A stretch of 64,000 nucleotides of DNA from Macrostomum lignano (taxonomy: Eukaryota): positions 62,001 through 126,000 of the forward strand of contig NIVC01000587.1 in assembly GCA_002269645.1 (NCBI GenBank), given 5' to 3'. The position numbers and the translations under genes were made by a program. The stretch's first letter is position 1. The number at the start of each line of letters is the position of its first letter. The notes beneath the pieces were generated by a model. The model saw nothing but the letters and a program-made list of their open reading frames with translations, searched no databases and was not told the origin of the DNA. This document shows, one piece after another, positions 5,344-8,300 of this stretch.

Positions 5344-8300
5344 ATGTCGCAGAAGTCTATTCTGCAGTTCTTCTCGCCGCAGAACAGCGGCCAGGCTAAG
5401 AAGCTGCCCTGGCCCGCCGCATCGCCGTCGGCTGGCGCTTTGTCTTCGCCATCAGGCGCAGCAAAGACGCCGAAAAGTTTGAAAGCGCCGGCTCAGTCTG
5501 CTTCTTCCGCTAAAAAGCAAAAATCAATTTCAAAGACGCCGAAACGGAAGGATAAGACTGATAAGCAGCAGCAAGTGCCGGGCAGGCCGGCTGAAGGCGA
5601 CTTAGTCTGGGCCAGGATGGACCCGTATCCGTGGTGGCCCGCTCTAGTCTGCCGGCATCCGACCCGGCGCCGGACTTTTGAAGCCAATCGTCGGCCGGAT
5701 CGGCCCGGCCGGGTGCACGTGCAATTTTTGGACAGTCCGCCCAACCGGTCCTGGGTGCCGGCCGACTGTGTGCAGCTCTGGACTGACTTAGCTGGCGGCA
5801 ATTGCGAACAGGTATTAAATCCCCAGCACTAAATATCACCGGTGGTTATTTTCTGTGTGTGTGTGTGTGTGTGTGTTAAAGGCAACATGCATGGTCAGCG
5901 AGCAAAAGGACAATAAAATGAGGGGTGGGGTTGAGAAGTGACCCCAATTAACAGGGGCAATAAAATAAAGGTAGGGTTGAGAAGTCACCCCAATTAACAG
6001 GGGGCAATAAAATGAGGGTGGGGTAGTGGGGTAGAGAAATGACCCCAATTAACAGGGGGCAATAAAATGAGGGTGGGGTAGTGGAGTAGAGAAGTGACCC
6101 CAACTCACAGCTGGTAGCAATAAAATGAGAGGTGGTGTAGTGGGGTAGAGAAGTGACCCCAACTCACAGCTGGGAGCAATAAAATGCTAGATAATACTAC
6201 TGATTTCAAGTAGCTTTATGGATTCTAAGCCAACATAATTTATCTATCTATAAAGCATCAGTTCATTCGATTTGATCCCCGCCCCTGGATCACGCGACCG
6301 CATAGGCCCGCAGCATGATGTCCTGCGGAGAGTCTATGGAACCGGAGGATCCAAAACTTGCTGCCGCTTATAAGATGGCGCTGGATGCTCAGCCTCTTAG
6401 CCGGTCCGACAGATTAGACAAACTGCTGGCCCAGCAGGAGCCATCGTCTGGCGAGGAGGATAATGCCGGACCGAATGGGACTAGCATTGACGAAGATGCG
6501 GATGAGGCGGTGTCAACTGTTCGCAAACGGGGCAGAGAGGAATCGCCAGTAAGTATTTTAGCAAGCTACTTTTAGTAGTTCATACAGTACCGAAATGTAT
6601 TTCTTTCATTTCTTTGTTTAGATCAATTTTGCATATTTAATATTACCATATATTACGAGCGTAAGTACTACAAACTTCGAGTACTTCAGAGTACTACCAA
6701 AAAGCTAGGGCCGCTTTTACACCCTGTGTGAGTGCGTTCGTGTGTAAATGTCCATTTAAGGCAAGAAGAGTGCCATTAACGTTTATATTTTTATTGTTCT
6801 TGAATGTTAGAATTAGCATTCCATACTAATTACTTTGTTGTGACGAGTAATATAAAAGCAACATTGCTGATATTTTAATTGCTATTTATTAATAAATTGC
6901 CATTTAGGACGCGAATTCCGGTCCTGCATCGAAACTGCCAGCTAGAAAGAAGCGCCGCGTGGCTGTTATTGAATCGGACGACGATGAAGAACCGAAGGCT
7001 GAGTCGGATATGGATTCGGGTTAGTTCGAATTGAGGAAACGATGGTTTAAATAGCGTATAGGGAATCTTTCTTTCTTAGGGTGGAGGCAAAAGTGGGGCG
7101 CTTGGCTGCGATTGGTTGGCGGTGTGCCGGTTTGTGGTGGGTTTGTCTTAACCACCTCCAGTTTTTGGGGAGGGTGCGTTTATTAGCCCTGTGCGATTAA
7201 ACCGTTGGCATAAAGAGATCTGCTTGCTCTTTATCCTCCCTTATCCTGAGTTGTAGCTTCAGAAATAAAAATTAAATTGATAAAGCTTGTTAAACACATG
7301 TAGACATTACATCTCTAATTGCATCTCAGCCAAGTGTATTTGGAATCTATCTGAAATAAAGCAGCTATCCAGCATTTACAGCTTGATGCAGCTGATGATC
7401 TGGATGGCGCTGCCGCCGCACTTGCTGGCCAGGCAGGTGGCCAGCTTGCTGATGTTGGTGCCGCTGGAGAAGAAGCAGGTGATCAGGTTGCTCACCAGGC
7501 ACGTCACGGAGCTGATGCCGTTCTGCTGCAGGCAGTTTGTGTCGATGCTGAGCACGGGAACGACCTCGTGAATGATGTCGTTCACGACCTCGTTCTTCTG
7601 CTCCGGAGTGTAGGCGGCGGCGGCGAAGGCCACGAGAGCGAACAGACAGACGAGCTTGTACATGGCTGCTGAGCTGGGTGCTTTGGTTGCTGGCTTCTTG
7701 AGACTGGCTGCTGGGTTGAGTTGCTGATTGGGTCTCGGGCTCGGTCGCTGGGCTCTCATTTATGGTGTCGCTGGTGCCGCTGCAGGTGACGCGGTCTCGC
7801 CCTGCCGCGCCGCCCACGCCCTGTCAGAGCTGTCATTTGCCTTAGGAAGGTTAGTAAATCTATTTCAATCAGAGGTAGTCAGCTTGACATAGCCAAGTGC
7901 GTCTCGATTTTATCAGTCTCATGAACTGCCACTTTGCCAAATTGCCACAGTTTTCTCACACTCGCAAAACTCTAAGCAGCGACCTTTTTCATTGAAAATA
8001 TCATTCTTTGCTAGTATGCATTGGGGCCTTGTGTTTTAAAGTAAACTTTAAACTCTTCTTTCGACACTTTTTCAAATATTTGACCCACTTTCAATTCGAA
8101 TTTTCATCAAAAAAGTTATGCATGATTGCCGAAGAATTACAATTTTTTTAAGTTAATGTGAAAAAAATCGACCAGACGGTTCTCGAAAAAAATCACAGAC
8201 AGACAGACAGACAGACAGACAGACAGACAGACAGACAGACAGACAGACAGACAGACAGACAGACAGACAGACAGACAGACAGACAGACAGACAGACAGAC

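Follow-up and report, generated by a model that had tools for sequence, protein, structure and literature searches.

A probable secreted six-cysteine helical protein of a Macrostomum-restricted family, encoded antisense within an MSH6 intron

Introduction

Saposin-like proteins (SAPLIPs), which include saposins A-D, surfactant protein B, the nematode caenopores and trematode saposin-like proteins, are secreted proteins of ~80 amino acids (aa) with six cysteines in the framework C-x2/3-C...C-x~10-C...C-x5-C, and some invertebrate SAPLIPs are multi-gene gut or defence effectors. The pheromones attractin of Aplysia and Er of Euplotes are also small secreted helical proteins with three disulfides. 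Here, we analyze a gene on the minus strand of a 64,000-nucleotide (nt) stretch of the Macrostomum lignano genome (assembly GCA_002269645.1, contig NIVC01000587.1, positions 62,001 to 126,000; hereafter, the window), which lies antisense within an intron of MSH6 and encodes a 95-aa precursor of a small six-cysteine protein. Like SAPLIPs, the protein is predicted to be secreted, of similar length, with three presumed disulfides and a bundle of four to five helices around a hydrophobic interior; unlike SAPLIPs, its family does not have their cysteine framework, and its first helix is cysteine-free. The resemblance to SAPLIPs is therefore a functional analogy at best. Attractin and Er differ from it in being shorter (~58 and ~40 aa), in having two- or three-helix cores and in their gland-specific pheromone expression, as opposed to the body-wide expression described below. 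A parallel by analogy only, with no homology, is found in conotoxin superfamilies and amphibian skin peptides, in which the 5' untranslated region (UTR), signal and N-terminal segment are conserved while a cysteine core varies around invariant cysteines; in the family described here no processing site is visible, and the contrast between the two halves is modest with weak statistics.

Results

The gene and its precursor

The gene is an open reading frame (ORF) of 95 codons that reads from ATG to TAA as MYKL...CIKL (Table 1). The initial annotation, made from the letters of the window, had described this antisense frame with its 17-aa signal peptide, 23-aa acidic spacer, cysteine spacing, terminal IKL and N-I-S sequon, and we found all of these as described. 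The signal peptide (M1-A17), which we called by applying the (-3,-1) rule by eye, has a lysine in its n-region, a 14-residue hydrophobic core and alanines at positions -3 to -1, and the cleavage motif A-[AS]-[AS]/Y-T is kept across subfamilies. The segment that follows (residues 18-40, 23 aa) has a net charge of -3 in the window protein and of -2 to -4 in 6 of 7 members; it is shortened in the relative P0005 and absent from P0021. The six cysteines lie at precursor positions 44, 55, 63, 77, 82 and 92, in the frame C-x10-C-x7-C-x13-C-x4-C-x9-C followed by IKL, and the sequon is N70-I-S. After cleavage, the protein would have ~78 aa, a mass of 8.3 kDa and a grand average of hydropathy (GRAVY) of +0.48. 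Its composition is hydrophobic, poor in charge and rich in Ser, Gly, Ala and Asn, and across the family the cysteine core has a GRAVY of +0.45 to +0.91, a net charge of 0 to +3 and plentiful small residues.

As had been remarked, codons end almost entirely in G or C: the G+C fraction at third positions (GC3) is 0.94 (89 of 95 codons), compared with 0.66-0.76 in the MSH6 exons and at most 0.84 in every other window ORF of at least 90 aa. A hidden Markov model (HMM) of the family, run against the six-frame translation of the window, matched this ORF as its sole hit (E = 3.6e-44), and neither this search nor an ORF scan revealed further family copies in the window. The specificity of the HMM, the intact 288-nt frame with all six cysteines invariant in nine genomic copies (in the window and at five other loci) and a ratio of nonsynonymous to synonymous substitution rates (dN/dS) below 1, both in the N-terminal half and between species, show that this is no chance ORF. 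With high confidence, we regard the gene as genuine, intact and almost certainly expressed, and its product as a small secreted six-cysteine helical protein of a Macrostomum family.

A transmembrane reading of the precursor was rejected. The most hydrophobic 19-residue stretch (Kyte-Doolittle, KD, 1.07-2.08) shifts position between members, the predicted helices are 5-15 residues long, and no conserved transmembrane-like segment was found across the members tested. The proposed prepro layout, for its part, is unproven: no dibasic, furin-type or other recognisable processing site lies at the junction of spacer and core, where no member has a K/R pair, and AlphaFold2 (AF2) packs the acidic segment as helix 1. 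This segment may serve as a pro-region or, alternatively, belong to the fold as its first helix.

A multi-copy family restricted to Macrostomum

The close relatives of the window protein are M. lignano 'hypothetical proteins', whose cluster representatives are 75-87% identical to it, and a single protein that occurs in two Logan samples. This close subfamily holds at least 17 GenBank accessions among its cluster members, and the window protein matches its sequences (P0001-P0018) at 75-99% identity (E 1e-35 to 1e-47) with an identical cysteine frame. A profile search of 1.84 billion representatives recovered four divergent subfamilies (P0019-P0022) that are 39-47% identical and share the cysteine frame, and it returned no credible relatives outside Macrostomum; those with a source given (P0019-P0021) are all from M. 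lignano. P0022 (979 aa) has the family domain without its last two cysteines, fused to ligand-gated-ion-channel-like and lectin-like sequence; a chimera, at the level of either the transcript or the gene model, is the most likely explanation.

GenBank members include PAA85397.1 (BOX15_Mlig003912g2), PAA46020.1 and PAA77063.1 (Mlig000320g4 and Mlig003595g1) and PAA78711-78714; the gene ids include BOX15_Mlig001791, 000320, 003912 and 013012, and all are annotated as 'hypothetical protein' only; PAA85397.1 is treated below, and the others are 75-94% identical to the window protein. Literature searches found no publication on this family, full-text search found no saposin, antimicrobial-peptide or cell-atlas literature on Macrostomum that bears on it, and the family gene IDs were not found in the supplements of other M. 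lignano papers that we searched, besides PMC7336406. The family is thus undescribed and has no detectable relatives; its members were already known as GenBank hypothetical proteins, and their general kind, lineage-specific secreted cysteine-rich proteins, is familiar.

Four of the genomic copies form a tandem array on NIVC01000671 (L003), accompanied by a truncated fragment, and there are singletons at two further loci (L004 and L005). The truncated copy (L003:1511-1663, minus strand) lies beside the array and retains the C-terminal half (residues 47-95, 94% identical); its 3' flank resembles window 7314-7372, which suggests birth-and-death turnover. At L001, the 3' end of the Logan contig from the other Macrostomum sample (1090-1179) is tRNA-like (GGTTCGAATCCC box B); ARAGORN does not predict a tRNA in this stretch, which may be a tRNA-derived short interspersed element (SINE).

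Searches for proteins identical to the 95-aa or the 127-aa ORF gave no match, and PAA85397.1 (P0018, Mlig003912.g2) was reached through cluster members. This transcript-derived model is one residue off the window ORF (L38I) and sits antisense in an annotated 1415-aa PWWP + MutS I-V gene on NIVC01000330. The NIVC01000330 locus is 98.3% identical to window 2809-11975 including indels, and ~99.7% identical to window 5300-11300 outside indels; judged by this identity, it is the same locus in the other haplotype or assembly. Since the allelic locus carries a GenBank model, the gene is not hidden, as the initial annotation had called it. Its description as an orphan is apt insofar as the family is genus-restricted, and wrong insofar as the gene is one of many (at least 17 accessions) and not single-copy; the paralogue search that had been proposed alongside recovered this multi-copy Macrostomum family.

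Predicted structure and comparison with known families

With an alignment of five sequences, AF2 predicted five helices (predicted local distance difference test, pLDDT, 77; predicted template modelling score, pTM, 0.60). The same five helices were obtained with eight sequences that included divergent subfamilies (pLDDT 82, pTM 0.67), at mature residues 3-17, 25-30, 36-50, 54-65 and 69-73; helix 1 is less confident (pLDDT 67-73) and is packed against the core. The prediction thus agrees with the earlier expectation of a secreted, predominantly helical six-cysteine protein. The amphipathic stretches noted between the cysteines are weakly borne out: the hydrophobic moment of helix 3 exceeds that of shuffled sequences (p = 0.018), whereas the other helices give p values of 0.05-0.18.

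Foldseek is weak on small helical bundles, and with either model it returned 0 hits in the PDB at E<=0.001, the best (TM score ~0.4) being unrelated proteins. Against BFVD nothing was significant; the top match, an uncharacterised phage protein (E = 0.83, TM 0.64), was disregarded. The structural search that had been suggested therefore yielded a predicted helical bundle and no neighbour in the PDB or BFVD, and the supposed likeness to attractin and Er-1 had no counterpart among the PDB matches.

Sequence searches were equally negative. No Pfam family matched more than one of eight representative members at E<=10, and none of the matches was a saposin family, whereas human saposins A-D, used as a positive control, matched SapB_1/SapB_2 at 1e-9 to 1e-15. 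The PDB sequence profile gave a chance match to SecB (E = 0.48) and no saposin, and hhalign of the family profile against a human saposin profile gave 0.2% probability over 5-6 aligned columns. The cysteine pattern is also not that of SAPLIPs, as the first cysteine is residue 27 of the mature protein and both CxxC and Cx5C pairs are lacking. The label 'Saposin B-type domain-containing', which UniRef attaches to three paralogues, is unsupported by Pfam, PDB profile, hhalign or Foldseek and was rejected. Both the misfit to saposins and the absence of a clear match to any well-characterised family accord with what the initial annotation had stated.

Expression

The Mlig_3_7 gene models are genome-guided RNA-seq assemblies with TransDecoder ORFs (PMC5730564), and the annotated paralogues and the allelic model therefore rest on transcripts. 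Positional RNA-seq data of Arbore et al. were reanalysed by Brand et al. 2020 (PMC7336406, Table S8). In that table, the closest paralogue, Mlig000320.g4 (P0017, 94% identical, 288 nt), has counts of 3,806 in A (head), 7,806 in B, 5,528 in C and 3,575 in D (whole worm), with expression values of -5.1/-4.3/-4.9/-5.6; Mlig000320.g3 has counts of 3,790, 7,938, 5,935 and 3,873 and nearly the same values. For typical genes, the table lists read counts in the tens to hundreds and values between -9 and -12, and only 1 of its first 60 rows exceeds the Mlig000320 transcripts. Both transcripts are assigned to class 0,0,0 ('Non-Specific') and have no neoblast or germline flags, and in the social data the contrasts of octets with isolated worms and with pairs were not significant for the Mlig000320 paralogues (log2 fold change -0.11 to -0.36, adjusted p value, padj, 0.33-0.85; PMC7336406).

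The closest paralogue is thus among the most abundant transcripts and is expressed body-wide. Its thousands of reads agree with the high expression that had been predicted from codon bias. A seminal-fluid or adhesive-gland role had also been raised, and expression in the prostate or tail adhesive glands is disfavoured by the 'Non-Specific' class of this paralogue, its high head counts and its lack of response to social group size.

Promoter and transcript ends

The window copy and its paralogues are homologous from 7372, just past the stop, to ~7838. This stretch delimits a compact intronless unit of ~465 bp that consists of promoter, 5'UTR and single-exon coding sequence (CDS), so that the gene has its own promoter; the same promoter blocks, single exon and 288-nt CDS are shared by the copies. 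Across an alignment of eight promoters, including a copy from another Macrostomum sample (L001/L002), the sequence GCGTCA-C/G-CTG is unchanged in 8/8, and the TATA-like box sits ~20 nt downstream of this block. The GC box and the TGACAG motifs are putative functional elements, to judge from their conservation. Several partial transcript-derived GenBank models start 57-66 nt 5' of the ATG, that is, 30-40 nt past the TATA-like box, which points to a TATA-directed transcription start site (TSS) near 7720-7730. The 3' flanks of the paralogues cannot be aligned, yet each contains AATACA or AATAAA 30-60 nt after the stop.

Five GenBank models (P0002, P0007, P0011, P0013 and P0018) are 127 aa long. 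Their ATG, at window 7757-7759, falls within the TATA-like box (CATAAATG), with 32 non-hydrophobic residues in front of the signal peptide. These models probably begin too far upstream, and we take the likely product to be the 95-aa form.

We considered whether a transposon carries the 465-bp unit and rejected this, as the unit has no terminal inverted repeats. A lone flanking direct repeat (7328-7351/7891-7914) is 18/24 identical with a 9-mer seed, which is at chance level for 1.6 kb. An Rfam scan of the window gave no match.

Sequence evolution

Divergence is unevenly spread along the gene. Between the window copy and the L003 copies, the 96-nt 5'UTR is 100% identical, the signal peptide and N-terminal half are 95-98% identical and the core is 87% identical, with amino-acid differences at 1-3 of 43 N-terminal positions versus 11-13 of 52 core positions (Fisher p = 0.005-0.018). 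The dN/dS is ~0.1-0.4 in the N-terminal half and 0.43 between species, and the ratio of nonsynonymous to synonymous differences per site (pN/pS) in the core is 1.4-6. These values suggest diversifying selection on the cysteine core, and the combination of a near-identical 5'UTR, signal peptide and N-terminal helix with a fast-changing core would fit an effector under such selection.

In its core the window copy is closest to L004 (95%), whereas in its 5' part it most resembles L003. The two haplotypes (window and L006) differ at three CDS positions, 7523, 7538 and 7552, which comprise the L38I replacement and two synonymous changes, none of them disabling. All three lie within 30 nt, against a flanking intron divergence of ~0.2%, and the L38I variant agrees with the L003-type paralogues. 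Together, the split affinities of core and 5' part and the clustering of haplotype differences hint at ectopic gene conversion among paralogues, and there may be a short conversion tract around 7523-7552.

The host gene and its surroundings

The host gene was recognised as MSH6 by a PIP-box, PWWP, MutS_I, MutS_III and MutS_V in plus-strand exons (Pfam). Its coding exons were set by stop-free stretches and splice-site phases, and no additional exon is required. The peptide gene does lie antisense in an MSH6 intron, as had been reported, but this is the second coding intron and would be intron 3 only with an untranslated 5' exon. Other family copies lie elsewhere, and the position within MSH6 therefore appears to be incidental, an accident of duplication. 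A search with an MSH6 exon for an orthologous locus gave matches of <=42% identity only.

The same intron contains an (ACAG)n microsatellite (8195-8793; 600 bp, 150 copies, 89% matches), ~430 bp upstream of the peptide-gene promoter, whose length differs between the window and L006. A dispersed ~135-bp repeat occurs at window 2699-2820, 10503-10636, 12777-12908 and 17816-17918 and at 8533-8671 of L004/L005; its copies are 83-89% identical, lie in both orientations in MSH6 introns and near paralogue loci, and look like a miniature inverted-repeat transposable element or a SINE. MSH6 and its upstream region also hold minisatellites at 4106-5211, 9849-10226, 11244-11975, 14190-14883, 16889-17449 and 18306-18630, with periods of 25/51, 16, 28, 28/197, 31 and 30/90 nt; several yield long spurious ORFs on both strands, and copy number varies between the window and L006.

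Further along the window are a 462-aa ORF without a Pfam match (22395-23783, minus strand), a trinucleotide repeat that encodes >90 consecutive leucines in one frame (25549-26088, plus strand), an intronless-looking E2 ubiquitin-conjugating enzyme gene (27997-28641, plus strand; UQ_con, 2e-38), a long-terminal-repeat retrotransposon Gag-Pol with an intact 1,235-aa ORF (46113-49820, plus strand; RVT_1, RT_RNaseH, Integrase_H2C2, rve) and TPR-rich exons that resemble kinesin light chain or nephrocystin-3 (55418-57568, minus strand).

Table 1. Features of the six-cysteine protein gene and of its host gene in the window
Feature	Position	Strand	Basis
Single-exon CDS, 95-aa precursor	7376..7663	-	Direct reading; TAA stop at 7376-7378; frame intact in nine genomic copies
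Signal peptide, residues 1-17, predicted cleavage AAA/YT	7613..7663	-	(-3,-1) rule; KD hydropathy 2.9 over 12 residues
Acidic N-terminal segment, residues 18-40, predicted helix 1	7544..7612	-	Net charge, AF2
Cysteine-rich hydrophobic core, residues 41-95, predicted helices 2-5	7379..7543	-	Six invariant cysteines, AF2
Inferred 5'UTR	7664..7729	-	Inferred TSS ~7720-7730
TATA-like box CATAAAT	7758..7764	-	Kept in 7/8 aligned promoters, including the other Macrostomum sample
Nearly invariant promoter block GCGTCACCTGCAG	7780..7792	-	E-box CACCTG; CAGCTG in L001/L002
Two TGACAG motifs (7830-7835, 7821-7826) and GC box GGGCGTGGGCGG (7810-7821)	7810..7835	-	Kept in most copies and L001/L002
Candidate poly(A) signal variant AATACA, 36-41 nt past stop	7335..7340	-	Inferred; paralogue comparison
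MSH6 coding exon 1, PIP-box QKSILQFF + PWWP	5344..5811	+	ATG at 5344, Pfam
MSH6 coding exon 2, acidic linker	6306..6550	+	Donor at 6549 or 6553
MSH6 second coding intron, host of the peptide gene	6551..9263 (approx.)	+	Splice-site analysis
MSH6 coding exon 3	9264..9781	+	Acceptor most likely 9264
MSH6 coding, MutS_I start	10905 onward	+	Pfam, stop-free stretch
MutS_III	13070-14062	+	Pfam
MutS_V Walker-A motif	17484-17780	+	Pfam

Discussion

We propose that the signal peptide is cleaved and that the protein would then fold, within the secretory pathway, into a bundle of five helices held together by three disulfides, probably with the nested pairing C1-C6, C2-C5 and C3-C4. An acidic amphipathic helix would precede a core that is unusually hydrophobic, near-uncharged, slightly basic and rich in small residues. 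Such a protein may serve as an abundant secreted effector that interacts with lipids or membranes, in antimicrobial defence and/or in the lysis of ingested cells. It could be released in epidermal, pharyngeal or gut secretions and would play a role analogous to that of saposin-like effectors from outside their family. From hydrophobicity, architecture, abundance, copy number and core diversification, we put the probability that the protein is an effector interacting with lipids or membranes, in defence or digestion, at roughly 0.4; a membrane-active or antimicrobial role is a possible candidate. We advance only tentatively, as a proposal more likely to fail than to hold, the wider idea that the family founds a new disulfide-stapled five-helix fold that has no neighbour among solved structures. 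Macrostomid flatworms would use it as an abundant effector in host defence or to lyse prey, and tandem duplication, ectopic gene conversion and positive selection would have diversified its cysteine core, with hardly any change in the 5'UTR, signal peptide and acidic helix.

Several points weigh against an effector role. With a net charge of 0 to +3, the core is only weakly basic by the standard of classical cationic antimicrobials, comparison of hydrophobic moments with shuffles indicates modest amphipathicity overall, and neither sequence nor structure searches found similarity to any known membrane-active family. The AF2 model was built on just eight sequences and is of moderate confidence. 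The expression data come from the closest paralogue, at 94% identity, with reads that multi-map among near-identical copies, and the 'Non-Specific' class rules out gonad- or tail-limited expression only. Lastly, one pN/pS comparison alone was nominally significant (p = 0.022, uncorrected), and the extreme codon bias depresses dS and so inflates core pN/pS.

The main rival, to which we accord a small but real chance, holds that the protein is a structural or material part of a body-wide secretion (epidermal mucus, rhabdites or extracellular matrix) with no membrane activity. It would account for the very high transcript abundance in all body fragments and for a hydrophobic, low-charge composition rich in Ser, Gly, Ala and Asn, and a multi-copy family with tandem arrays permits high dosage. 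A fast core behind a conserved prepro part is more typical of effectors, however, and the predicted product is a small compact globular bundle instead of a repetitive or fibrous protein.

It is quite improbable that the protein is a highly divergent true SAPLIP, as the automatic UniRef label on three paralogues implies. Its ~78 aa, six cysteines, predicted multi-helix bundle, hydrophobicity and secretion would all suit that family, but 0 of 8 members match Pfam SapB_1, SapB_2 or Saposin at E<=10, which the human controls do match; hhalign assigned 0.2%, no saposin appeared in the PDB profile or among the Foldseek matches listed, and the N-terminal C-x2/3-C and C-terminal C-x5-C pairs are missing. 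We consider it just as improbable that the protein signals through water or by contact, as a ligand or pheromone of the attractin/Er-1 kind. A small, secreted, disulfide-rich, helical protein that is genus-restricted and fast-evolving could be such a ligand, but there was no structural match to PDB entries, small helical pheromones included, the abundant body-wide expression is unresponsive to social group size, unlike that of a regulated signal, and the strongly hydrophobic core would be odd in a diffusible ligand.

We hardly expect the window copy to be silent, a recently dispersed duplicate or pseudogene-in-waiting among paralogues that alone are expressed. The expression evidence does come from a paralogue with multi-mapping reads, and a truncated copy at L003:1511-1663 points to birth-and-death turnover in the family; against this, the gene has an intact ORF and retains all of the conserved promoter blocks, the allelic locus has a transcript-cluster model of its own (Mlig003912.g2), and the one replacement and two synonymous differences between haplotypes disable nothing. 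Least probable is a reproductive protein of prostate seminal fluid or the tail adhesive glands, even though small, secreted, lineage-restricted and rapidly evolving proteins are reportedly typical of Macrostomum seminal fluid and core pN/pS is at or above 1, since the closest paralogue is not specific to the tail, testis or ovary region (head 3,806 versus whole worm 3,575, class 0,0,0) and the octet contrasts with isolated worms and pairs are not significant (padj 0.33-0.85).

Whichever role applies, neither the 'Saposin B-type domain' label nor the 127-aa GenBank models appear to be correct, and their propagation would be unwise. The nesting in MSH6 would be of consequence only if strong transcription of the antisense gene disturbed the expression of its host, and the 465-bp promoter-plus-CDS unit could supply a strong short promoter for transgenes. 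To our knowledge, almost no secreted immune or digestive effectors have been characterised in free-living flatworms. A genus-restricted, very abundant family without relatives is a reasonable entry point to flatworm secreted effectors, and M. lignano offers transgenesis, RNA interference and in situ methods for such study.

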